From IMG/VR virus record IMGVR_UViG_3300015261_000001, positions 62,001 to 126,000 of that record: a DNA stretch of 64,000 nucleotides; one strand, written 5' to 3'. The notes below the pieces were generated by a model. That model was not told where the DNA came from. It ran no database searches and saw nothing but the letters and a program-made list of their open reading frames with translations. Of this stretch, positions 18,331 through 54,451 are shown one piece after another (position 1 is the stretch's first letter; every line of letters starts with the position of its first letter). A program made the translations under genes and the position numbers.

Positions 18331-19863
18331 CTAATCCAGGGAGCATTCCGAGTTGATACGTTTGAACGTTTTCTGTTTATCAGCAAAAGCAATTTCTCGC
18401 TTCGCCAAATACTCCACATGCTTACCCAAGTCCAAACACACCCCAAAGATAAAGGCAGGTGTAATCTCGTCATTGAACTTCCCGAAGAGAGCCCGCAGAC
18501 GACCGATCATTTGTTTGTTAGCCTGAGTAGACGAAACAGTATGCAGACAGCAGACGGTAACAAGACCCGGAATGTCTTTACCCGTCCCGCAGCTGTTTGG
18601 AGTAGTAATAACTACCTCATGCTGTAAATATTTATCCTTGGAATCTTTCTTCTTGGAGTCTTCGCCTGTGAAGGTTTCAATATCCATTTCCGGGTACTTC
18701 GCTTTGAACATGCCCAGCATGGTGTCGCACATGTTCACCCGAGAGAAGAAGAAGAGGCACTTGGTACCCTCCCGCCTTCTATCCAAGTAGTATTCCTGAA
18801 ACATCTTGTCCGCGATCTTGAAGTAGAACTTCGTGAGCGCTTCAGACTTCAGGATGCTTTCATCCACAGCCTTGTCGTTGTAGGAGCCGAACTGTTCGGT
18901 CTTGATCCGATGTCGCCGGAGGTTGATCCGATACAGGTAAGCCACCACGTCGATGTAGTTCTCAGGCTCTGCCTCTTTAAGACGGAACCGCGGTGGGTAT
19001 AACCACTTGTACACTTTGTTGGTGAAAGGGTCGTCAGCTTTCAAGGTTGCCGACAGCACAAAGAGTTTCTTGATGTTGCCATACATCATCGAGAGGAAGA
19101 TCTGGTGAATTGCTTCGTGACCTTCTTCAATGATGCGCAGACCTGGATTGATCGCTTTCATGACCTGATCCAGATCCATCTCCTCGGGATCCCGTTTCCG
19201 CAAGAAGACTTCAATACGAGACATCGGCAAAATGATAATCTTGGGAGAGATCGTACCTGCTTCCATAGCTCGCGCCAGAGAGGGTAGGTTGTTCTCCCAC
19301 AACACAAGGTCGCCGGGTGCCAGCTTAACGATCTTGTGCAGTTCTTTAACCCAGGTTGTGATGTAGCGCGGCTGCATCGTGATGATGGTGCGTTTACCCG
19401 TTTTGATCATCGAGTAAATGCTCATAAAGGTCTTACCGTTGCCGGTGGCAGCGTTGTTGATCTTTATGTAACCTTCATCCAGCATGTAGTTAACCCATTC
19501 GGGCTGACCTTCACGCATGTTGTCGAAACCGGGGTTGAATTCGAAGGTAACATCTTGCCCCTCGATTTCAGGTTCCTTTTCAATCTTGATACGTGACTCT
19601 TTGTACCCCCGGTAAACCGCGTACTCCATGAACTCTTTAAACAGCTCAGCTGGTAGCCTGTATTCTTTCTTGTCAGGACTCGACCGAGCAAACACGTGCG
19701 TAACAACTGTGCGCTGCTTATTTGTGCCGGGAATGGGCTCCTTACCCGTCTTGAACAAATGGTGAGCGCAAAACGGCATCACTACACGCGCCACGAACTC
19801 TTCAAAGAACCCGTGAATCCTGATGTAGTGATTCGCTTTGCTGATAATAGCTGTTTCACGCAT
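18331..19863 (-). CDS. SF2 helicase (phiKZ gp75-like)
   Basis: Walker A AATGNGKT, motif II IIEEGHE, motif III SAT, motif V GKDIPGL, motif VI QMIGRLR. Confidence 0.9.
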   Translation of the reverse strand: MRETAIISKANHYIRIHGFFEEFVARVVMPFCAHHLFKTGKEPIPGTNKQRTVVTHVFARSSPDKKEYRLPAELFKEFMEYAVYRGYKESRIKIEKEPEIEGQDVTFEFNPGFDNMREGQPEWVNYMLDEGYIKINNAATGNGKTFMSIYSMIKTGKRTIITMQPRYITTWVKELHKIVKLAPGDLVLWENNLPSLARAMEAGTISPKIIILPMSRIEVFLRKRDPEEMDLDQVMKAINPGLRIIEEGHEAIHQIFLSMMYGNIKKLFVLSATLKADDPFTNKVYKWLYPPRFRLKEAEPENYIDVVAYLYRINLRRHRIKTEQFGSYNDKAVDESILKSEALTKFYFKIADKMFQEYYLDRRREGTKCLFFFSRVNMCDTMLGMFKAKYPEMDIETFTGEDSKKKDSKDKYLQHEVVITTPNSCGTGKDIPGLVTVCCLHTVSSTQANKQMIGRLRALFGKFNDEITPAFIFGVCLDLGKHVEYLAKREIAFADKQKTFKRINSECSLD

Positions 19864-19910
19864 AAGCGACCTCTTAAGGGGACTAAGGGCCCCTTGAGGC
19901 CCTCACCCTG

Positions 19911-21920
19911 TTACGACACCGCCAAACTGAAGAAGCACTCGAGCGGACTGCCTTGACGGTTGACCATACGGAAGGTCTTGATCTCGTTCAGTACGTTCTG
20001 TTGCTTCTCGTAGATCATCAACATGCCAGCGCCGCGTCCATTGATAGCGTCAGCATAGTTGGAGAAGTATTTCGGAACATCGCCGTTAGCCAGCGAGCAA
20101 TCGTAATTGCTTGGATCACGGGTCACGGTGGAGAACAGCACGTTTTCCACATGCACCATGTTGATACCACGAATTTCTTGGTTGATCAAACTCCAATATT
20201 CAGCCCACACCTCACCGAAGATCTTCGGCGTGACGGTTTGTGCTTTCCACGCAGAGTTGCGCTTATTGTAAGTAATGAAGTTTTCCACACGAGCCCGGTG
20301 CATGTCCAGGTCTTCGCGGGTATACGGCAGGGTGAAGATTGGCGAAGTGGTGTTCCAACCACTCAAGTCGATCGAGATGTGTTTCTTCCCTTCGGCTTGC
20401 CAACCACGCTCCAGCACGTACTTCAAGAACTCCAACGAGAAACACGCATTACGCGACGAGACCGAAGTCCGTGCCGCGTGTTGTTGCACCGTGGTACCGC
20501 CCATCATGATGTCTTCGATCTGATAGCGGAATGTCACTTCCTGGAAGTACGGCAGCTTATCCAGACTCAGGTTATCCAGCATATCGAGCGAACGAATGTC
20601 AGACAGCACATTCACAATGTCCGCTTTAAGGATGAGATCCGAGCCCGGTGTACATACCTCAGCCTGAAGGAAGATTTCATCACCGTTGGAGCTGATGATG
20701 TTCTTGTCCTTGACGTGTGGTACGAACTGCCGTGTAACTGCGTTCCGAATGAAGTGCTTCGTCGACAACATACCCTGACCCATCGGGTTACAGATAGCCG
20801 TCGCCGAGTACATACCCACGTTTGCACTCTTACGCATCATCACGTTGTAGGGGACAGCCGACTTCAGCATACCGTAACAAACGCCGCACGGCACGCCTGA
20901 AAGATGGCTATTGCAGTAAGCGATGCTACGAACGTGAATTACTTCCCCCGCCTTAATATTCCACATAGTTTGGCTATCGATCAATTCCAGGCGCCCATCT
21001 TCGAACCGACGGAACTTACCTTGAAGGGATGACGCCATCGCGGCGTTAGCAACTTTGATCGGCACACACAGCTGAGTACCACAATCCCATTCGTGGTTAA
21101 TCGAGCTAATTACAGAGGTCAAAATGTGTGCTTTACGGTGGAACCACTCGGAGTCTTTCAGCGCCTTACCGTTGTTGGTCAGAGCTTTACCCGCAGCGTT
21201 ACGCTCACCCAAAGAGTCAGCCAGGTTGGTGATCCCGTGTGCATACGGAACCATTACCGCGTTCGGCATGATGGCGTTACTCAAGTCAAACACACCACCA
21301 CGAATTTCCGTGGTTTGATATGCTTGGTTGATACTCACGCCACCAGTACGCGCCAGCAGTGCAACTGTGTTCTGACCCAATGAGGGGGCTTCACGGATGT
21401 ACGAAGAGAACAACTCTTCACCTTCGTCGATGGTGATCTTCTTGGCCAGGATGTCATCCCGAATAGCCATGATACCATCATCTTCCATGAACTCTGCCAC
21501 AGACTCAGCAGTCGCAGAAATTGCCGACTGCTCGCTCATTACCACGATCAGGTTGTTGAGCTTGTTTTGCCAGATGTGAATCAACATCTTGATCCCGTCA
21601 ATTTCAACGGGGTCGTGTTTCGTTGGCATGATCCGTCTTAAGAACGTGTTGATGGGGATAGCGTTAGTGTTGTCGTCATAAACGATTTCCTTCGCGCCCT
21701 CCACCACGTTCGACGGGATCAACTCATCTACCGAGTAGGGAACGTCGTTATAACGACGGTGGATAATTAAACCCACCCACGTCAACATCAACACGAACGT
21801 ATCACTCAGTGCTGTAGCGCCGGAGTCATCAGTGACCTCCACCAGCATCCGAGTGCCTCGCCAACTCAACATCTTTTCTTCTGGACAATTGGCGAACTCG
21901 CGGAGATTGAGTTTAATCAT
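19911..21920 (-). CDS. Non-virion RNAP beta'-like C-terminal subunit (phiKZ gp74-like)
   Basis: KALKDSEWFHRK bridge helix, WDCGT..RSIAYC..PCGVCYG Zn site, NPMGQGMLSTKH trigger loop. Confidence 0.9.
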   Translation of the reverse strand: MIKLNLREFANCPEEKMLSWRGTRMLVEVTDDSGATALSDTFVLMLTWVGLIIHRRYNDVPYSVDELIPSNVVEGAKEIVYDDNTNAIPINTFLRRIMPTKHDPVEIDGIKMLIHIWQNKLNNLIVVMSEQSAISATAESVAEFMEDDGIMAIRDDILAKKITIDEGEELFSSYIREAPSLGQNTVALLARTGGVSINQAYQTTEIRGGVFDLSNAIMPNAVMVPYAHGITNLADSLGERNAAGKALTNNGKALKDSEWFHRKAHILTSVISSINHEWDCGTQLCVPIKVANAAMASSLQGKFRRFEDGRLELIDSQTMWNIKAGEVIHVRSIAYCNSHLSGVPCGVCYGMLKSAVPYNVMMRKSANVGMYSATAICNPMGQGMLSTKHFIRNAVTRQFVPHVKDKNIISSNGDEIFLQAEVCTPGSDLILKADIVNVLSDIRSLDMLDNLSLDKLPYFQEVTFRYQIEDIMMGGTTVQQHAARTSVSSRNACFSLEFLKYVLERGWQAEGKKHISIDLSGWNTTSPIFTLPYTREDLDMHRARVENFITYNKRNSAWKAQTVTPKIFGEVWAEYWSLINQEIRGINMVHVENVLFSTVTRDPSNYDCSLANGDVPKYFSNYADAINGRGAGMLMIYEKQQNVLNEIKTFRMVNRQGSPLECFFSLAVS

Positions 21921-32830: not shown

Positions 32831-33234
32831 TTCTTCAATCGCTCCGTGTCTAGCACTTTATAAAGTTCACCTGTTACCAGGATTGTTTGCGCAAGGTCAT
32901 ACTTGACTCCGTCCACTACAACGCGTGAAGCCAAAATGAGCCTGTAATTGTTTGTCTCTCCAGTAACATTTTGTCGAGAGACGTCAACGATAACGTCATC
33001 GAACTGTTCCTCCATGTACGCTTTGAACTTATCGCGCATCTGAGAAACCATTTGTTCCGGGTTGCTGGAGTAGTCTTTGAACAACATGTAGAAATTAGGA
33101 ACGTCCCCCAGAATCTTTCCCTGATTCTGTCGCCCAGTAAACCAATAGGTCACGTGTAGCGAAATAGCAGCTTCGACCGATTGGGTTTCCCAACCAGAAC
33201 TTGTATCCATGGTCCCTATACAGAAACGACCCAT
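32827..33234 (-). CDS. Hypothetical protein
   Basis: 135 aa, SD GAGGA. Confidence 0.7.
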   Translation of the reverse strand: MGRFCIGTMDTSSGWETQSVEAAISLHVTYWFTGRQNQGKILGDVPNFYMLFKDYSSNPEQMVSQMRDKFKAYMEEQFDDVIVDVSRQNVTGETNNYRLILASRVVVDGVKYDLAQTILVTGELYKVLDTERLKK

Positions 33235-33335
33235 GCGACTATCCTCTTTGAAAGAAAAAACCCTCTATATAAAGTCAAAAAAAAAATAACCAAGTAGGGT
33301 GTTACCCCCACCTGGCTATATGATACGGACGTCGG

Positions 33336-33986
33336 TTAATCTTCAGGCGGTTCTACAACCGGCTCGACATACGACTTCACTCGTTCACCGCGTTCGCTGG
33401 TAAGGTCGAATGTAGTGCTCAGACGATGATGGTCGATTGCTCGCCAAGTCTTCTGAATGTCTACCCGTTCACGGAATGGCAACTTGCCACCCAGTGTGTC
33501 GTTGTACTGCGTGTGGCGAAGCTGCGCTTTCTCTTCTACCACTGTCAGGTTCAGCAAACCGTTCATAGCGCGGCGATAGAACAAGTTGTCCTCGGCGACG
33601 CCTGTACAGAAATGGCTGAACTCGCCACCGTAGCCGCTGATCTCTTCAGCAAGGTAATCTCGCATCAGGTCAGGGTGAGCCATGATGTAATCCCGCATGT
33701 AGCCCTCGGCGCCTTGCAGAGCTTGAATGCTCCCCAAGTAACCAACAGCATAACGCGACACGAACTCACCATCTTCGTTACCCAGGAGACGCTTACTCAT
33801 TTCCCATGCACGTGAGTTGAGGAAGTTGTCAAAGTTCTCCAAGGTCTTTGTAGCTTGCTGACCCAACCAACCACCGGCATTTTGCAGCATAGCGGTTGTG
33901 TTGTTTACGTACTCGGCGTATTTGTTAATTGCCTCATCCGTGAAACTACCTGAGATCGCATAACTGAACGCATTTGCACTGTTCAT
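33336..33986 (-). CDS. Hypothetical protein downstream of nvRNAP beta' N-terminal subunit
   Basis: 216 aa, SD AGGAGG. Confidence 0.75.
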   Translation of the reverse strand: MNSANAFSYAISGSFTDEAINKYAEYVNNTTAMLQNAGGWLGQQATKTLENFDNFLNSRAWEMSKRLLGNEDGEFVSRYAVGYLGSIQALQGAEGYMRDYIMAHPDLMRDYLAEEISGYGGEFSHFCTGVAEDNLFYRRAMNGLLNLTVVEEKAQLRHTQYNDTLGGKLPFRERVDIQKTWRAIDHHRLSTTFDLTSERGERVKSYVEPVVEPPED

Positions 33987-34004
33987 ATGCTTGGTCCTCC
34001 TTAA

Positions 34005-35627
34005 TTAGCTCACCAGTGGTGTTTGCATGAGCAATGTGTTCAGGTTCATCAAGTTAGTCGCTGTTTGACCGGCGTACTTGCTGACCTTGAATGGGGTGTT
34101 CTTGTCCAGCGTCTGGTGATGACCGAAGCTGCCATACGACTTGGCCTTGGACTCGTTGTCGAGCAAGAACAGTACGTACATTTGGTCACCGTCGAAGTCG
34201 GCGTTGTATTCACCCACACTCAAAATCGAGATCTTGATACTTTCGTCTTCGAGATCACGATTCACTTTCAAGAAGTTGCCACGTCGACTCAAGTACTCAA
34301 TCGACGGGTTACGACCAGCTTGAACAATACACTTACGGTTTACTTCAACATCTCTGAAGAATGCGTCGATCTCAGGTACGATCTCGTACGCTGCTCTCGC
34401 AATCATCTTCCGTGCACCGATCGGGGTAAACCCTAAGCGGTACAGATAGCTGGTGATTGGAATCTCCAGGATGGTAACCGTCATCTTCCACGGCATGATG
34501 ATCTCGTCACCATGGATGATACCGGTTTGTGAAGTAATTACCGAACGACCCGTGAATGGAACTGGGCCGGCGCAGACGTGCTTACGGTTGATACCGGGTT
34601 TGTTGAACAACGCTTTCGGGTTGTTGACCATGCGGAACTGGTCTGCCAACGCCACCAGGTTTTTGCCGGTGATGTCGATGTTCTTTTGCAGATCACGTTT
34701 AGTCATTTTGTAACAACTATTCGATTTCTGCGTATCGGCGATGGCGTGGTACAACTTTGCCGTTTCTGGATGGTGCTGGTAGGACAGAACTTCTTTGCCA
34801 GTCTTTTCCAACACTGTACAGTAACGACTTGGAACTTTCATGTAATCGCAGAAAGCCAAATGCTTGTAGCTGTAATAGAAGTCCAGGATCTGCTGGCCCT
34901 CATTACGGTATTTCGTCCAGCGAGCACCATTGCCAATCAGCAGGTACTCCATGATCCGGTCACAGTTGTCGTAGAACGAGTTCAGGTTGATCTCGTCGAT
35001 ATTGAGTTCTGTGAGCATCTGAGTCATGGCCATATTGGAACCATTGCGGTTCTTTTTCTGGGTGGCTCGGTATGCAGGGTCAATGAAGTAACGGGCTACA
35101 CCAATCTTGGGACTGGGGTTGCCGATGGTGATGTTGTTGAAGAATGTGGAGAAGAAGCCGAGGTTGACAAACTTCTTCACGCCTTCGGGACAGCGCAACC
35201 AAATACGAGTGTCTTCGCCTTGGTCGAGGAACACTTCCGCTTTTGTACCACAACGCGGACATTCACGATCACTACCTTGAAGGTAGTTGCCTTTCATATG
35301 ACCACATTGACACTTGGCTACCGTATCGAAGGAATTGCCTTCAAACTCCATACGGGTCAAACGACTGAGTGCTTCGCGATCTTCTTCGAGGTTAAAGTCG
35401 AAGTCATTCAGGTACGCATGTTTCAGACGACTGACGTCGTGCAGGTAGTTGTAATCTTCGAAGTCGGGGTACAAGGGTTGCGAGAATGCTGGGTCGTCTT
35501 CGAGCGAATATGGGAGGTTTGAAGCATACCCCATAAACCACTTCATCGGATCCAGAGCTTCCTCGCTGTACTTTGTCAGCGCGTTCACGGCCAACAAGTT
35601 ACTCGGAGTTAATTCTGGGAATAGCAT
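34005..35627 (-). CDS. Non-virion RNAP beta'-like N-terminal catalytic subunit (phiKZ gp55-like), uninterrupted
   Basis: Catalytic YNADFDGDQM, GRSVI, GRNPSI, and N-terminal CQC..CPRC Zn ribbon. Likely start ATG 35627 with SD GGAG. Confidence 0.95.
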   Translation of the reverse strand: MLFPELTPSNLLAVNALTKYSEEALDPMKWFMGYASNLPYSLEDDPAFSQPLYPDFEDYNYLHDVSRLKHAYLNDFDFNLEEDREALSRLTRMEFEGNSFDTVAKCQCGHMKGNYLQGSDRECPRCGTKAEVFLDQGEDTRIWLRCPEGVKKFVNLGFFSTFFNNITIGNPSPKIGVARYFIDPAYRATQKKNRNGSNMAMTQMLTELNIDEINLNSFYDNCDRIMEYLLIGNGARWTKYRNEGQQILDFYYSYKHLAFCDYMKVPSRYCTVLEKTGKEVLSYQHHPETAKLYHAIADTQKSNSCYKMTKRDLQKNIDITGKNLVALADQFRMVNNPKALFNKPGINRKHVCAGPVPFTGRSVITSQTGIIHGDEIIMPWKMTVTILEIPITSYLYRLGFTPIGARKMIARAAYEIVPEIDAFFRDVEVNRKCIVQAGRNPSIEYLSRRGNFLKVNRDLEDESIKISILSVGEYNADFDGDQMYVLFLLDNESKAKSYGSFGHHQTLDKNTPFKVSKYAGQTATNLMNLNTLLMQTPLVS

Positions 35628-44519: not shown

Positions 44520-44885
44520 TTAAAAGGAAAAGGTGAATAACAAATGGTTGTTATTTCGACCCATGGCTTTGACTTCAACCTGCGCGCTGGTCGGAATACC
44601 AAGTGTTACACCCGTCAGAGTTTCTTCCAAACAAGGAATAACTCCAAAGCGTGTTCTCACAATTCCCATCTCAGAAATGTTGTTGTAACCCAAGCTGCTC
44701 AAGCACGCAATAACGTCGGAACGATCTACGCGCTGTTTAAGCAACTCTTTCTCCGCACCAATGGCACGGTATAGGGTGTATTGTTTAAGATCGATAGAGA
44801 AGCTCGTCGACACCTTGTAGCTCCTATTTTGCGGTATTGGGTAGACATAAGAATGTAGGACGGGTAAAAATTCAGTGAAAAACAT
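44520..44885 (-). CDS. Hypothetical protein (array 2)
   Basis: 121 aa, start uncertain. Confidence 0.55.
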   Translation of the reverse strand: MFFTEFLPVLHSYVYPIPQNRSYKVSTSFSIDLKQYTLYRAIGAEKELLKQRVDRSDVIACLSSLGYNNISEMGIVRTRFGVIPCLEETLTGVTLGIPTSAQVEVKAMGRNNNHLLFTFSF

Positions 44886-44943: not shown

Positions 44944-45930
44944 TTACAACACCATGCCCAGGCTGTTCGAGCCAGTGCTGACGTCTTTCTGCTTGGTGTA
45001 GTCGACAGCCACTTTGGACTTGGCTTCATCGACGCCTTCGATTTCTTCTTGCAACGCGGCCAGAGCGTCGCCGTGGTCCAGAACGATGTGCAGCTGGGTC
45101 ATCTCTTTCGGCAGGTTGACATCTTTACCGAACACGCCGGTGGTGCGATACATCGAACCGACGAACATCGGGATGATTTCGTTGCTGGTACGGAACAGGC
45201 TGGCTACTGCGACCGGAGGCTTGCCTTCGAAGTCAGAAGAAGTCTTCTGGTCGAAGAACTGGATACGGCTCAGCGCTGGCGGAACCTTGCCGCGAGCGGA
45301 GTAGTTGAAGATACGCTTGATATCTTCGTAGTCCATTTCGGTGTTGCTGGCGTCGAACAGGATGCTCAGCAGGTTCAGGCCGCCGACGATTTCTTCGTTG
45401 ACTTCGCCGCGGGTTTTGTCGACGGTGTTCTCGTACGGGATGTAGCACATTGGAGCGCCGAGCTGGCTTTCCGCAGTTTGGTTGGCGAACGAGGTCAGGC
45501 CGCCGACGGAGTTTTCTTTCTCGATGACCGAGGTATGATCGGAAACCAAGCACAGTACTGCAACGTGGCCAGCTTGGATCAGCAGACGAGCAACCAGTAC
45601 AGCGAGCATGCTGCCGGTACCGCCAGCGGTGTTCGAGATGATGACGTTGTAGCGACCGGCTTTGTGTTTCTTGATCACGGCTTCAACGAAAGGGATGGCC
45701 TTTTCGAAGTTGACCGATTTGTCCTTACCGCTACCCAGCGCACCTTCGATGCGTTCAACAACGAACTGGTCGGCGCTGCCGTTTTTGTCGCTGGAATCCA
45801 GACCGATGAAGCGGGCGTTTTTGTTGCCCAGGGTTTTGGCGCCTTTCTTCAATTCGAGAGACAGGTTGATCCCGGTACCGCCACAAGCCCAGTAAGTGAT
45901 GTCGGAAAAGTTTTCGGTGGTCTTAGACAT
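44944..45930 (-). CDS. phuZ: PhuZ tubulin
   Basis: ACGGTGIN, LDSS, GSGKD, tubulin signature AGGTGS, T7-loop-like MDYEDI, 328 aa. Confidence 0.95.
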   Translation of the reverse strand: MSKTTENFSDITYWACGGTGINLSLELKKGAKTLGNKNARFIGLDSSDKNGSADQFVVERIEGALGSGKDKSVNFEKAIPFVEAVIKKHKAGRYNVIISNTAGGTGSMLAVLVARLLIQAGHVAVLCLVSDHTSVIEKENSVGGLTSFANQTAESQLGAPMCYIPYENTVDKTRGEVNEEIVGGLNLLSILFDASNTEMDYEDIKRIFNYSARGKVPPALSRIQFFDQKTSSDFEGKPPVAVASLFRTSNEIIPMFVGSMYRTTGVFGKDVNLPKEMTQLHIVLDHGDALAALQEEIEGVDEAKSKVAVDYTKQKDVSTGSNSLGMVL

Positions 45931-45998
45931 GAACGAGACTCTCTATATGAGTACATGAAATTGGAGCAAAGCTAAATACTGTTCGCTTTACTAATCAA

Positions 45999-46015
45999 AT
46001 AATTTAGGTCTGAAA
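45999..46015 (-). promoter_or_regulatory. Early promoter motif
   Basis: TTTCAGACCTAAATTAT upstream of phuZ. Confidence 0.7.
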
Positions 46016-46041
46016 TATTCCAGTCCAGTTTTGTCTCCGGC

Positions 46042-46182
46042 ATAAAAATAAACCCCAGCAGACCCGAACGAAGGGGGTGAGCCTGCCAGGGCATCTCAAG
46101 TGAGATAAATTGCCTGTAAGGAGAACATCACCGCCAAACCACCTGAGAACCATGGCCAGGTCAACAAAGCGGTACTGACGGT
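46042..46182 (-). ncRNA. Candidate small RNA 2
   Basis: No ORF in the track. Several stem-loops. The terminal stem pairs fully only with G-U on the minus strand and is followed by a U tract. Confidence 0.45.
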
Positions 46183-46203
46183 ATAAGATATCCTCTTCGG
46201 GTG

Positions 46204-46415
46204 AAAAATAAAAACGCGAAATAGAACCTTACCCCAGCAACCCGAAGGAAGCTGGGGTAAGGGTGGGGGAATTTGTAGGCAACTTCCTCGTAGGAAAGAC
46301 AGAGATAACCTAAACCGAAGAAGGTGTGAGCGGTGCTCCCCCTAACCTACTCACGAAACACAACCACAAAACGGGCGTAAACCGAAACTGCTGCGACACA
46401 ATCCACGAGGTTCAC
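46204..46415 (-). ncRNA. Candidate small RNA 1 (or long structured 3' UTR)
   Basis: Begins at a TATG late-start motif (46415-46418). Ends in a cUUCGg-capped hairpin (46227-46262) plus U tract. Confidence 0.45.
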
Positions 46416-46427
46416 ATACAATGAACA

Positions 46428-47090
46428 CTAGAGGAACTCCGCATACTCTTCGTTCTGCAACAACTCACGCAGATCGTTAAGTTGAGTACGGATTTCTTCA
46501 TCGCTGCTAACGGCCGTGTTGAGGATGTCGCGCATGTCGGAGATAAGGTTGGACAAAGTAGCGGTGACAGGTTCGTCCTCGCGCCAATGCACTACCTTAC
46601 CTTTCCATGCCTCCCAGACCTGTACACGACCACCGGTATGCGAGTCGTATTTGATCGCAGCCTTTACCGCATCTTCCGCTGGTTTGCCAATTGACATAAC
46701 AGCGTCGGCCAATACCGCACCGCTACCGATGGCATATGGACCGGTAACAATGAAGATGTTGGTGTTGGTTGCATGCTCACCGCTCTTGTAATCCCAGCAG
46801 AGCACTTCTCCGTTCTTACCGACCGCCAGCAATTGAAAGCTGGCATCGAGGTCATCCATAACCGTATCGACAGTAACACCCTTGGCCAATTCCTGCTTGA
46901 TGCGCTGTGCCAAGAGCGTATCGCCGCACAAACCAAAGGCTGCAATTTCCACGTTGTTGATGTACCACGTTACATCAGGGTGAGCGATAAAGAGTCGTCG
47001 CGATGCTTCTTGGCGACTTTTCTCATCTTCTTCATCCGATGAATGTGAATCACTTGCCAGGTTCTTGCCGTCCCACGCTACAGTTGACAT
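46428..47090 (-). CDS. HslV/proteasome-beta (Ntn-hydrolase)-like protein with non-canonical catalytic residues
   Basis: (M)STVAWDG..LASDS, GLCG, AIGSGA, DSHTGG. Ser at position 1 and Arg at the Lys33-equivalent position. Confidence 0.85.
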   Translation of the reverse strand: MSTVAWDGKNLASDSHSSDEEDEKSRQEASRRLFIAHPDVTWYINNVEIAAFGLCGDTLLAQRIKQELAKGVTVDTVMDDLDASFQLLAVGKNGEVLCWDYKSGEHATNTNIFIVTGPYAIGSGAVLADAVMSIGKPAEDAVKAAIKYDSHTGGRVQVWEAWKGKVVHWREDEPVTATLSNLISDMRDILNTAVSSDEEIRTQLNDLRELLQNEEYAEFL

Positions 47091-47108
47091 GAGAAGTACC
47101 CCCGAGGG

Positions 47109-47792
47109 TTAGTGGGTGAGTTGTGGGGCTTTCTCCGACTCTTCCTCAGCTGGTGGGGAAGGGAGCGGATGCATGTCCCGGGTGATGTCTTTGATCAAGC
47201 TGGTCAATTGCTCGATGGACATATCGCCCACCTTGCTACCAACTTCCTTGATGTTGACTTCTGGAGGCGCTGGGCGGGTGCTCAGCACTTCTGGAATAGG
47301 TGGCAGATTGAAGATCTGCAAATCACCACCACAGCTGATGTCCAGCTTGATGGCAGCCTTAACGCCTGCTTGAGCGCGACCTTTCTTGCCGATCTCCATT
47401 TGGGAGTAAGCATAAGGCGCGCCGCTACCTACAGCCACCGGCGGATCCATTGGGATACACACTACGTCCTGCTTGCCAGTACGAGCAGGGTGACCGCTGA
47501 TGACGTAGCAGGAGCCGTTCTCCAGAACACACAGAGCATCGAAGCTCAGATCGATTTCAGGTTGCAGTACCGAACGGTAGGTAATGCCCTTTTGCAGCAT
47601 CTCCCGAACGTAAGGAATCGCAGTAGCGCCACCAGCAAACCCGTAAGCCAGTACCTTTACCCCGTTGATTTCCCAGTACTCGTCTTCTTTGGGTGTAAAC
47701 AGTTTCTGGCCACCAGCAGGCAACTTCATATCAGCCATGGTCATTTGGCTGTCGGTTACCAATTCTTGGCCATCATAAGCAACTACAGTCAT
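47109..47792 (-). CDS. HslV/proteasome-beta (Ntn-hydrolase)-like protease
   Basis: (M)TVVAYDG..LVTDSQ..QKLF (Thr1, with Asp-Lys spacing of 16 as in HslV), GFAG, AVGSGA, DISCGG. Confidence 0.88.
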   Translation of the reverse strand: MTVVAYDGQELVTDSQMTMADMKLPAGGQKLFTPKEDEYWEINGVKVLAYGFAGGATAIPYVREMLQKGITYRSVLQPEIDLSFDALCVLENGSCYVISGHPARTGKQDVVCIPMDPPVAVGSGAPYAYSQMEIGKKGRAQAGVKAAIKLDISCGGDLQIFNLPPIPEVLSTRPAPPEVNIKEVGSKVGDMSIEQLTSLIKDITRDMHPLPSPPAEEESEKAPQLTH

Positions 47793-51139: not shown

Positions 51140-51186
51140 TAACCCTCCCAGCCCTTTGCGGGGCTGGGAGGGTTAGCCTTATGCCG
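51140..51186. terminator. Hairpin between convergent genes, followed by TTATGCCG
   Basis: TAACCCTCCCAGCCC-TTTGCG-GGGCTGGGAGGGTTA. Confidence 0.85.
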
Positions 51187-54100
51187 CTCTACGAAGTTGC
51201 AGGTGTCGTTTATTCCGTTCCAGTTTAGCGTCGTCGATGATACTGTCGATCGTCATCAGGCGAGACTGTTCTGGTGGCAGGAGTTTAACGAGTTTACGGA
51301 TTTCAGCTTCCAGTCGCAGCGCCAACAGGTTGTCGTTGGTAGTCAACAACTCATCGGTCAACTGAGCAACTTTGGCCTTCACCTTGCCCATGAACTGAAC
51401 CACATGCGGTTCCATCGCTGGAGCAGCGCTAGGGTTGTTCTCGTTCAAGATGTTGCGGGTCTCTGTCAGAGCAATACCCGGCGGAATACCGTAAAGGGAT
51501 TTGTTCATCCCCAGCTTAATAAACCAGTAACTGAGAAGCCACGCGATAACCAAGTCATCGTGCATTTTCTTGTCGTGGTCTATTCGATCGCCTCGAGTTT
51601 TCAAGTTGATCAGCTCGTCTGCCAGTTTCGGATAGTTCAAACCGTAACCGGTGTTGCCCACCGCTTCCATGATCAGACCATACAGGGTGTCCCGAGAAGT
51701 CTTGGTCGTCACAAACCCGAAGTGTTGCTTGTACTTCAGGTAGAAGTTCTTGGTGCGGTTACTGAAGGTAGTGCGGCGGATCTCTTCGTACTCGTTTTCA
51801 TGGTTAACGGTGTCTTGATAGATCGCGTTGTAAATCCGTTGGAACGGATCCATGCCTTTAGCAGGCAACATAATCAGCAGACTGTCGATCATGTGGTGAG
51901 CGTAGTTACGCTCAATGACCAGCAAGCTGTTCTTGATTACGTCCAGCAGGTCCACCAGGATGTTGGTGACGTTATCCAAGAAGGTCAGTGCGTAGCGACC
52001 TACTCCTACCACCTTACCGGTCCTCATACTTCGAATGATGATGGTGCAGGCGTCCTTGTTGATTGCCGACGAAGTATCACAACCGATCAAGAAGAAGTCG
52101 TTGTGTTCCTTCTTGCTCATCTCCACCAGCTCTTGCTGCGTCACAAAGAAGTCCATGTACAACTGGCTGTCTTTGTACTCCTTGCTCCAAACCACCTCCC
52201 GCTTCATGTTGTTGATAGCTTCACGAGTTACGTCGTCAAACAGGCGGTTCTCACCGTCCTCTACCCACATGAGCAGCAAGTCGATCTTCGCCTTGGCCAA
52301 GCTCAAGCTAAGTTCGTCGATAACTTCCTTCACCCAGGTTTTGTCTTTACCCAGTTGCAGGTAGTTATAAACCATACTGACCGACGGAGACGTGGTCTCT
52401 TTCGGAGACGCCCGGATTAGGCGTTGTTTCAGATGGCTCTCACCGAACGAGTCGAAGAAGCTTTCACGCCACTCGGTTGCAGTCATCAGACGCTTGAACA
52501 TGAAATCACCGCTAGGGTGCAGTGTCGTGTTCGGCGTAGTGATGTGGTTAATACCGTACGGCAACCCAGCAACTCGGCAGTTGCTCATTTCTGTCAGTGC
52601 CGAAGGCGCGCAACCGTCGATGATGGTCTCAATGAAGCTGATGTAAGCAGACTCATCATAGTTGGTGGTGCCTACCCGGAGACCCCGTCCCAAGTCACCA
52701 GCTTGCGCCTGACTTTGTTGCGGAACGTTAACGTACATAGTGTTGATTTTGTCTTCACCGAAAGCTTTGTACGTCAGGGAAGTACCAGCGTCCTTGTCCT
52801 TGTAGCTTGAGTTGATCAAGTACTTGGGGATACTGTTCCGAATGGTCTTGATGGCGTTGATGAACTGAGCGCGGTTGTCAGACTTCAGTGTAATCAGGTG
52901 AGAGGTGTAACCCCGACCCATGATGTACGTCAACCAGAAGTTGATTACCTGCACCGCCACAGTGTTGTGGGTCACCAAGAACTCATCGGTGATGTACAGG
53001 TGTTCTACCGCGTCCACTTCAATACACGTGCACTCGTCGTCACCGGCATACTTGATGTCGGTAATGAACAGGGCGTTGGTGGTGTAAACTGGTTTCGGTT
53101 TTTCCGCAAGGTAGAAGTAGTCAATAGCTTCCGGCAGGGTAATAGTCACGCCCGTTTTGGTCTTCTTGGCGGTACCGCCAAAGCTCCGAGCGAGGTAACT
53201 CAATTGACCTGTCATAGCACGCCCTACAGCCACGTGCGCCGAATCCTTCCCTACCGTAGCCCCAACGTCGAGAAACGCGTGGAGCAGCTTCTTACGGTCT
53301 TCTAGAGCACCTTCAAGGTACTCCGGCGCGGCACCGTACTCCGCGTTCACCGAAAACGGCTTTCCATCCGCTCGCCAGAGGATAGTGGCGTCCTGATTAC
53401 CAGCAACTTCCACACCCATTGGCAGATTGACGTACAGATATTGAAGCTGTGCTGCATTGAGACCCTGAAGGTGGATCTCCTTACCCACTTCCTCACCTTG
53501 CAGTAACAGACCCAGAACATAAGGGTCGATTGGCAGCTGTTGCTTAGGACCATCCTCGGCATCAATCAACGGCAGTTGGAGCTTGGCACCTTTCTTTAGA
53601 CGCTCAATCAAGCCTGAAGTGGTGTAGTCATCCCAATAAGCTTTGCCTTCATGCTTGTCGGAATGGTCTCGGGCTGTCCACAAGTGTTCAGTGCCCACAT
53701 CGGTATAACGACCATCACTGGTGTACACGCGATATAGCCGCTTGGTCCCTTGTGGGTGAATGCCGATAACTGTTGCTTCATTGCCGTAACGGTCAACGAT
53801 GGCTTCGCCTACTTGCAAGTCACCGATCTTCTTCCAGGTATCTTTAGTCGTGATGTTGCGACCAAGGTCCTTTGTTTTAATCCGCACCTTTGAACTGTTA
53901 CGCTGCAACTTGCCCTGCTGACGAGGCATGATCATGTACGTGGTAACGTGGTTCAGGTAAGACCACATGAAACTGATGTTACCGCGGTTAGCACGAAATC
54001 CGTGAGTCGGACCCAGACGACAGACTTCTCGCAAGAAGTACCAGAAGTTGGTTCGGGTCTCCTGAGCGATCATGGTGATCTGCTCGTTGGTCAGCTCTTC

Positions 54101-54451
54101 GGAATAAGGATCCAGTCCTTGCAACAACGGGTTGTTCAGTTGAAGCAAGAAGTAGTAGTTCTTGATACCTTGGCGACGGAAGATTTCAGCAGTCCGCAAG
54201 AACGAGGTGTTTTTCGTTCCAAGGTCAGGGGCGGCGCTGTACAGGTGGAAGTCTTTCAAGAAGCGAACAGTCTTGATGCCCCACAAGCTGTCTTCGTTGT
54301 AATGAGCCAGCAAAAGCTCATCTTCGGATCGACTCTCTGGATCGATACGCTTCTTCCGATCGTCGATCAACGTCTTAGGGAGGTTGTTGCTTCCTAAGTA
54401 GTCGACCAACTTTTTTGCAAAGAGAAGATTCTCATTGTCAGTTGTGTCCAT
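51179..54451 (-). CDS. terL: Terminase large subunit with intein
   Basis: Walker A PRQQGK|TV interrupted by an intein, GRG, Walker B NYDESAY, TTP, nuclease IGCDTS..VIERN..HDDLVIAW. Confidence 0.95.
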   Translation of the reverse strand: MDTTDNENLLFAKKLVDYLGSNNLPKTLIDDRKKRIDPESRSEDELLLAHYNEDSLWGIKTVRFLKDFHLYSAAPDLGTKNTSFLRTAEIFRRQGIKNYYFLLQLNNPLLQGLDPYSEELTNEQITMIAQETRTNFWYFLREVCRLGPTHGFRANRGNISFMWSYLNHVTTYMIMPRQQGKLQRNSSKVRIKTKDLGRNITTKDTWKKIGDLQVGEAIVDRYGNEATVIGIHPQGTKRLYRVYTSDGRYTDVGTEHLWTARDHSDKHEGKAYWDDYTTSGLIERLKKGAKLQLPLIDAEDGPKQQLPIDPYVLGLLLQGEEVGKEIHLQGLNAAQLQYLYVNLPMGVEVAGNQDATILWRADGKPFSVNAEYGAAPEYLEGALEDRKKLLHAFLDVGATVGKDSAHVAVGRAMTGQLSYLARSFGGTAKKTKTGVTITLPEAIDYFYLAEKPKPVYTTNALFITDIKYAGDDECTCIEVDAVEHLYITDEFLVTHNTVAVQVINFWLTYIMGRGYTSHLITLKSDNRAQFINAIKTIRNSIPKYLINSSYKDKDAGTSLTYKAFGEDKINTMYVNVPQQSQAQAGDLGRGLRVGTTNYDESAYISFIETIIDGCAPSALTEMSNCRVAGLPYGINHITTPNTTLHPSGDFMFKRLMTATEWRESFFDSFGESHLKQRLIRASPKETTSPSVSMVYNYLQLGKDKTWVKEVIDELSLSLAKAKIDLLLMWVEDGENRLFDDVTREAINNMKREVVWSKEYKDSQLYMDFFVTQQELVEMSKKEHNDFFLIGCDTSSAINKDACTIIIRSMRTGKVVGVGRYALTFLDNVTNILVDLLDVIKNSLLVIERNYAHHMIDSLLIMLPAKGMDPFQRIYNAIYQDTVNHENEYEEIRRTTFSNRTKNFYLKYKQHFGFVTTKTSRDTLYGLIMEAVGNTGYGLNYPKLADELINLKTRGDRIDHDKKMHDDLVIAWLLSYWFIKLGMNKSLYGIPPGIALTETRNILNENNPSAAPAMEPHVVQFMGKVKAKVAQLTDELLTTNDNLLALRLEAEIRKLVKLLPPEQSRLMTIDSIIDDAKLERNKRHLQLRRAA
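52964..53908 (-). mobile_element. Class-3-type intein (315 aa) in the terL Walker A, with degenerate LAGLIDADG domain
   Basis: WKKIGDLQVGE, block B EHLW, block F CTCIEVD, block G VTHN|T. Removing it restores PRQQGKTVAV. Confidence 0.9.

Follow-up and report, generated by a model that had tools for sequence, protein, structure and literature searches.

Between an HslV-like gene and the tubulin gene phuZ of an EL-like nucleus-forming jumbo phage lies a conserved element of about 140 nt, a predicted small RNA whose main hairpin loop is complementary to the start codon region of a distant JADA-like gene. Loop and target sequence differ between phage lineages but stay complementary, and the RNA therefore most likely switches off translation of that gene, although transcript and repression are inferred from sequence alone. 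JADA is the trigger of the bacterial Avs5 immune sensor.

The analysed window is a stretch of 64,000 nucleotides, bases 62001-126000 of a 238,193-bp virus record (G000) with direct terminal repeats which was recovered from rhizosphere metagenomes. The phage is a chimallivirus and encodes PhuZ (44944-45930, minus; phrog_4733, E 1.7e-79) and two HslV-like peptidases (46428-47090 and 47109-47792, minus; phrog_1040). The gene order around phuZ matches that of Pseudomonas phage EL, the nearest named phage, whose PhuZ is only 49% identical. The element is located in the 497-nt non-coding spacer between the second HslV-like gene and phuZ, and the minus strand is the sense strand of all neighbouring genes. 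Further along the window (51179-54451, minus) a 1090-aa ORF sits at the position of the EL terminase large subunit (gp011, 1088 aa) and contains, as judged by eye only, an intein-like insert ending ...THNT.

The features of the region are as follows.
46042..46182, minus strand: candidate small RNA ('RNA-2') of about 135-141 nt, with the predicted 5' end at the A at 46182 and the 3' end in the U tract 46042-46051.
46179..46191, minus strand: conserved box ATATCTTATACCG, whose TAT(A/G) core (46182-46185) is the proposed start signal of the type read by the non-virion RNA polymerase (nvRNAP), with +1 at its last base; an inference.
46130..46182, minus strand: hairpin H1, a long interrupted stem that starts at the predicted first base of the RNA.
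46145..46158, minus strand: apical-loop seed UGGCCAUGGUUCUC (sRNA nt 25-38), complementary to positions -7..+7 of the JADA-like gene start (G000 35405, outside the window).
46107..46129, minus strand: single-stranded linker GAUGUUCUCCUUACAGGCAAUUU, in which CUCC..ACAGGC is conserved in most but not all relatives.
46093..46106, minus strand: short hairpin H2 (AUCUCA/UGAGAU).
46042..46092, minus strand: intrinsic terminator T2 with a 14-bp stem, a C/U-rich 13-nt loop and the U tract UUAUUUUUAU.
45996..46019, minus strand: putative early (virion-RNAP type) promoter of phuZ, ATTTCAGACCTAAATTATT, downstream of T2.
46204..46427, minus strand: upstream neighbour 'RNA-1', a conserved structured (pseudoknot-like) RNA with its own terminator T1 (46227-46262) and a U-rich tail, not part of the sRNA.
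44944..45930, minus strand: phuZ tubulin gene, the downstream neighbour.
46428..47090, minus strand: HslV-like peptidase gene, the upstream neighbour; a second copy lies at 47109-47792.

The observation underlying the original prediction is confirmed, as all the elements it described are present on the minus strand at the stated coordinates. These are the ACCUG/CAGGU stem with the loop GCCAUGGUUCU, the linker GAUGUUCUCCUUAC, the hairpin AUCUCA/UGAGAU, a G-U-containing terminal stem with the loop ACCCCCUUCGUUC at 46052-46092 followed by a U tract at 46042-46051, and the HslV-like RBS AGAACGAAGGAGAAUAACGAUG. It was missed, however, that the first stem is only the tip of the 53-nt hairpin H1. The 165 nt around the element fold to -65.4 kcal/mol, which is better than shuffled sequences (z -3.9, 0 of 200 shuffles as good). 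A scan of 45000-47500 against Rfam 15 at E values up to 10 gave only a match to NsiR1 with 16.7 bits against a gathering score of 39, which rests on the terminator alone. Scans for tRNAs and for sigma-70 promoters and terminators gave nothing useful, and T2 was missed by the terminator scan because only loops of 3-8 nt are allowed there.

EL has the same ~500-nt spacer with shared blocks visible by eye. A blastn search of the spacer against phage records gave no match, a scan of IMG/VR with the single PhuZ protein found none, and an exact two-block DNA pattern found only EL. A word search with PhuZ gave relatives from 84% down to 48% identity, from which we obtained 13 metagenomic loci (loci are designated here L with a number; L002 is part of the EL record), all with a spacer of 385-540 nt upstream of phuZ. 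Relatives of this phage occur in soil, rhizosphere, leaf litter, groundwater and wastewater metagenomes. A contig from another soil metagenome (X4) matches the window from 45506 to 46422 with 62 differences over 917 nt, and the likeness stops at the HslV stop codon; the HslV-like gene upstream is not alignable at 80% likeness. The spacer is therefore kept at least as well as phuZ.

Alignment of all 13 relatives with MAFFT followed by RNAalifold gave no structure because of misalignment, whereas RNAalifold on the five closest sequences gave H1, H2 and T2. A covariance model built from these five (R1) finds exactly one hit at the same place in all 13 first-round relatives (E 6e-37 to 0.09) and in EL, further hits in additional IMG/VR relatives, and a single copy in the 238-kb genome (46045-46185, 135.7 bits). 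The PhuZ proteins of the relatives with the element are only 42-84% identical to that of the window. In the resulting 15-row alignment, two rows of which are weak extra hits (see below), 85.3% of the pair cells are standard pairs against 36-46% when the 3' partners are slid, 34 of 36 pairs change on both sides, and 0 of 500 shuffles reach the observed values. In the three helices of H1 15 of 17 pairs change on both sides and 75-86% of the cells are paired; the corresponding numbers are 5 of 5 pairs for H2, and 14 of 14 pairs with 89.6% paired for T2. This alignment was fitted to the model, which inflates pairing somewhat, but the independent single-sequence folds show the same architecture. 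The frequent G-U pairs fix the strand as the minus strand. The ATG in the loop does not open a conserved reading frame, as EL reads M-V-L-stop and several other relatives read 3 to 14 codons, and a small ORF was therefore rejected. That the stretch has no RNA function of its own and consists of tandem terminators and chance hairpins in a long spacer, with the complementarity a coincidence, is very unlikely, as the covariation in H1 and H2 is not needed for termination, the spacer is conserved, and loop and target co-vary in five lineages (see below). The lack of an Rfam match and of expression data, and the occurrence of long complements at chance level genome-wide, would be in line with it.

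The family seems confined to the EL-like lineage, with PhuZ at least about 42% identical to that of the window. R1 gives no credible hit in RisingSun, where no complement was found either, and only a weak hit in Shewanella phage FishSpeaker (E 0.008), which is not backed by any complement to its JADA-like start. A hit in EL (L002 5145-5281, E 0.04) is a false positive in a coding region. This region (L002 5090-5400, EL record 19800-20110) holds an unannotated ORF downstream of phuZ which starts with GTG and is homologous to window 44520-44885 and to the 97-aa ORFs of the relatives. One lineage, L011 (2336-2401) and L012 (PhuZ 69% identical), has deleted the body of the sRNA but keeps RNA-1, T1, the TATCTTATACC box, a mini hairpin and the phuZ promoter.

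The promoter downstream of T2 matches a motif, aTTTnAnACCTAtATTAc, which occurs ten times in the genome against about 0.9 expected, all on the minus strand (G000 4707, 38286, 43895, 86256, 91238, 108009, 156765, 182229, 206993 and 230473; in the window 24256, 29238 and 46009). It contains TATATTAC and CTATATTA, the most over-represented 8-mers of the genome, and the homologous site is annotated in EL as a putative phage promoter. We take it as the early, virion-polymerase promoter of phuZ, which therefore does not need the upstream element as a leader. The RNA itself is inferred to begin at the box ATATCTTATACCG, which is near-invariant in 14 relatives and whose core is TATA in most and TATG in several of them. 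In phiKZ the non-virion polymerase starts late transcripts at the G of a TATG motif (PMC4666361), and by analogy +1 would be 46182, which is also the first base of H1; in EL the RNA is predicted at 18481-18616, with the TATA box at 18478-18481. This assignment rests on a 4-nt box and on analogy with phiKZ, and the exact box is not a recurrent motif in this genome. Of six minus-strand copies of TTATACCG three follow terminators, which is suggestive only, and EL shows no further intergenic copy in its first 50 kb. Two further copies of (T)TCTTATACCG / TTTTATACCG (G000 157288 and 33006, minus strand, outside the window) sit right after terminator hairpins and just upstream of early-type boxes, as at the sRNA locus, and may represent a second promoter class. 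None of the sequencing runs with matching sequence is on record as RNA. The four runs examined were Logan contigs, and those possibly derived from RNA are adapter-bounded fragments which cover genes as well as the spacer, so that they say nothing about transcription or ends.

An alternative would be that the element is only a cis-acting leader of phuZ, i.e. a second promoter followed by an attenuator, with the short RNA as by-product of premature termination as described for many phiKZ 5' UTRs. It lies immediately upstream of phuZ in all relatives, phiKZ and 201phi2-1 make many such short 5'-UTR RNAs, and L011 keeps the box and a mini hairpin without the RNA body. The geometry of a start site followed by a terminator within 250 nt upstream of a gene also fits, with the box at 46182-46185, T2 at 46042-46092 and the phuZ start at 45930, but the separate early promoter lies between T2 and phuZ. 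In addition T2 is a strong terminator in every relative, and a by-product would not keep a loop that co-varies with a gene 73 kb away. We regard this reading as unlikely, but the two roles are not exclusive.

RNA-1 directly upstream (46204-46427, minus) carries the invariant blocks AGGUUAGG and GUUGCCUACAAAA, a hairpin whose loop pairs with a downstream strand, inner hairpins, T1, and a TATG box at 46415-46418 right after the HslV stop. It has the look of an aptamer followed by a terminator, but a count of its helices on the MAFFT alignment gave only modest support. Pairing of the sRNA loop with the 5' end of RNA-1 (GAACC) shows no co-variation by eye, and dimerisation through a loop palindrome was dismissed because CCAUGG is not kept in several lineages. 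An 11-nt identity, GUUAGGAGUGU, links RNA-1 of EL (L002 3600-3625) with the start region of the JADA-like gene in lineage E (L033, L034, L039, L045, L047; lineages are defined below), and lineage E spacers also hold CUCCUAAC, which is complementary to that SD. RNA-1 may touch the same mRNA.

The complement of the conserved loop UGGCCAUGGUUCUC occurs on the minus strand at G000 35412-35399, exactly across the start of a 778-aa ORF (33069-35405; L023 1070-3406, minus) 73 kb away from the sRNA and outside the window. This gives 14 perfect pairs from -7 to +7 with a duplex energy of -28.4 kcal/mol. The orthologue in EL, gp081, has AGAGAACCAUGGC against the EL loop GCCAUGGUUCUCU, which gives 13 pairs. 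On its own this is weak evidence, since a scan of the whole spacer against the whole genome gives two 15-nt and three 13-nt complements in coding regions, which is about chance, and the match in the window is not significant without its position and the co-variation. In the window and in EL the site also overlaps the end of the upstream ORF (...REPWP) and is thus constrained by coding. The mean unpaired probability is 0.65 for the loop against 0.39 for the whole RNA. The conserved N-terminal motif (..ILRP..) of the target protein shows that the true start is at or next to the paired AUG, whereas the stored gene call (P0062, 766 aa) starts 12 codons too far downstream and cuts off this motif.

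For a co-variation test we used IMG/VR contigs that carry both loci and further targets from the records behind four of the PhuZ loci (G001-G004). In 15 genomes from five lineages the first 62 nt of the RNA were compared with the target start region (-25..+25); the fixed stretch was used since choosing the largest hairpin loop automatically failed for six genomes. The comparison does not include L011, L015, L016 (loop GGCCUGGUUCC) and L018 (loop GCCAAGGUUCC). The longest complement within a genome is 8-14 nt and always falls at sRNA nt 24-39, the apical loop of H1, but the sequences differ by lineage.
Lineage A (window, EL, G004): loop GCCAUGGUUC(UC), target site GAACCAUGGC, 10-14 pairs; loop/target pair GGCCAUGGUUCUC/GAGAACCAUGGCC.
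Lineage B (3300013713, G001): loop CAUGGCUCUC, target site GAGAGCCAUG, 10 pairs.
Lineage C (G003, G002): loop UUGGUUAGGUUCUC, target site GAGAACCUAACCAA, 14 and 10 pairs.
Lineage D (three contigs): loop UGGCUAGU, target site ACUAGCCA, 8 pairs.
Lineage E (five contigs): loop AGCUGGGUUU, target site AAACCCAGCU at codons 5-8, 9-10 pairs.

Comparisons between lineages average 6.05. For all 180 ways of choosing one genome per lineage the true pairing is the unique best of 120 permutations (P = 0.008, which is the floor of this test, 1/120). For G001-G004 the loops were read from the covariance model alignment before the targets were retrieved; three gave 10-13 nt outright, and in the fourth the loop as cut by the model gave 7 nt, and 10 nt once the full loop was read. 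Over a wider 250-nt zone shuffling of the target gives P of about 0.01 for lineages B and E and of 0.1-0.2 for lineage D, whose complement is only 8 nt (P about 0.2), and for contig 3300046810. This last contig is the one case in which no loop match was found, only an 8-nt match to the SD from the linker region. In lineages C, D and E the site lies outside the upstream ORF, so that overlapping coding cannot explain its conservation.

The target protein has no Pfam hit and belongs to phrog_13213, of unknown function. The gene directly upstream and in the same direction is assigned to phrog_2943 'polymerase' and hits PHIKZ123, the gp123 subunit of the phiKZ non-virion RNA polymerase. An AlphaFold model from 14 homologues is of only moderate quality (pLDDT 66), but in its C-terminal domain residues 466-755 match residues 448-721 of the solved structure of JADA (Pa36 gp316 / phiKZ gp124 family; PDB 9rp3, chain A) with a VIA-align Z of 13.8 and an rmsd of 3.9 A over 237 residues, while the next hit has Z 4.1. 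Foldseek gave a probability of 1.0 (E 4.8e-6). Searches of PDB sequences with phmmer and with a profile of the 14 homologues gave no hit at E up to 1, as expected for a family with few conserved residues. JADA is described as essential, early-expressed, abundant and of unknown function, as always directly downstream of an nvRNAP subunit gene, as the activator of Avs5 defence, and as toxic when its C-terminal domain is expressed alone (PMC12931631). In the present genome the JADA-like gene is the third of a predicted operon headed by an early-type promoter box.

The interpretation in the original prediction is thus partly supported. Its core idea, a trans-acting RNA whose hairpin loop is antisense to AGAACC-AUG-GC and represses translation of a phage early mRNA, is supported, with transcript and repression inferred from sequence alone, as exactly that sequence forms the start region of a phage gene and loop and target co-vary. 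The proposed repression of the neighbouring HslV-like gene, or of many mRNAs, through an anti-Shine-Dalgarno linker (UUCUCCUU) and the terminator loop (CCUUCGUUC) is not supported, though not excluded, and we consider it improbable. Both do match the RBS of the first HslV-like gene with 8-9 nt in the window and in its closest relative L008, and L017 has a different 10-nt pair, CCCCUUCAGC/GCUGAAGGGG; the linker is unpaired in the folds and the C/U-rich loop is kept in several relatives. However, no such match exists in L013, L014 or L016, and EL, L015 and L016 lack the CUCC linker altogether. C/U-rich loops match purine-rich RBSs easily, and the two sites overlap on the target and cannot bind together. 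Duplex prediction of the whole sRNA against the neighbouring starts was too noisy to be of use.

We propose that the apical loop of H1 pairs with the start region of the JADA-like mRNA, which should keep the 30S subunit off the mRNA and lower JADA synthesis. The pairing covers the start codon and the bases just upstream, and in one lineage codons 5-8 instead. The proposed logic is that of a timer: once the non-virion polymerase is active the sRNA would accumulate and shut off translation of an early, abundant protein whose C-terminal domain is toxic and which is sensed by Avs5. Our analysis itself establishes the structure, its conservation and single copy, the complementarity with its co-variation, and the likeness of the target to JADA, whereas a discrete transcript, its promoter and timing, repression as the effect, and any link to Avs5 are inferred. 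That the structured RNA is real is close to certain and pairing with this target is probable, repression of translation is somewhat more likely than not, and a link to Avs5 evasion is speculative; in the explanation as a whole we have moderate confidence. The middle and late transcripts of chimalliviruses are made inside the phage nucleus, so the sRNA would have to be exported.

The pairing evidence says nothing about the sign of the effect. The RNA might instead activate translation by opening an inhibitory fold, uncouple JADA translation from the overlapping or adjacent nvRNAP subunit gene, or guide RNase cleavage of the operon mRNA. The overlap of the site with the upstream ORF in the window and EL and the only moderate accessibility of the target site (unpaired probability 0.57) are compatible with such outcomes. 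They appear unlikely, as the duplex covers the start codon or lies within the 30S footprint in every lineage, which in sRNA systems usually leads to repression, and no conserved inhibitory hairpin around the start was seen in the one genome examined.

Short terminated RNAs of 70-250 nt, bounded by a phage promoter and an intrinsic terminator in a spacer or 5' UTR, were seen experimentally in chimalliviruses, namely the phiKZ 71-nt RNA upstream of PHIKZ221 and 141-nt RNA upstream of PHIKZ302, 201phi2-1 sRNA005, and the sRNA upstream of gp182, which is conserved as far as EL (Putzeys et al. 2024, PMC10914365; PMC11512511). These lie at other loci and have no known target, whereas the element upstream of phuZ has a co-varying predicted target but is known from sequence only; R1 finds no second copy in this genome. 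The c4 antisense RNA of phages P1 and P7 is likewise a phage-encoded structured RNA whose exposed loops pair with the ribosome-binding region of a phage mRNA and block translation. It is processed from the same operon as its target and uses two loops, while here RNA and target are 73 kb apart and one loop carries the seed, and the Rfam scan showed no similarity to C4. Trans-encoded sRNAs such as DicF on ftsZ and MicF on ompF share the short seed complementary to the SD-AUG region, the Rho-independent terminator with a U tail and the expected translational repression, but here the seed sits in a hairpin loop rather than at a single-stranded 5' end, and the RNA is encoded by a virulent jumbo phage with its own RNA polymerases. 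In CopA/CopT of plasmid R1 and RNA I/II of ColE1 recognition also starts from a hairpin loop of a highly structured antisense RNA, but these are cis-encoded and fully complementary to their target, whereas complementarity here is limited to 8-14 nt and the target site is not obviously in a loop.

The element is a new RNA family, while its proposed mechanism is known from other RNAs. A 2026 review of jumbo phages mentions only that phiKZ expresses non-coding RNAs of possible regulatory role, and we found no paper that links an sRNA to PhuZ, JADA or Chimalliviridae, although an earlier description cannot be excluded since most subscription journals were outside the search. A farther-reaching but doubtful reading is that nucleus-forming jumbo phages of the EL lineage use a dedicated small RNA, made by their own non-virion polymerase, to cap or time the synthesis of JADA. 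This would be the first sRNA-mRNA regulatory pair in this phage family, and would imply export of a regulatory RNA from the phage nucleus and a post-transcriptional way of keeping an immune trigger, and a toxic protein, low after the early phase.

The element provides a concrete predicted sRNA-target pair in this family, with natural compensatory variants in five lineages and a cultivable member, Pseudomonas phage EL. A regulator of JADA translation would offer a handle on the dosage and timing of JADA, and it also bears on how regulatory RNAs act in a phage that separates transcription from translation.
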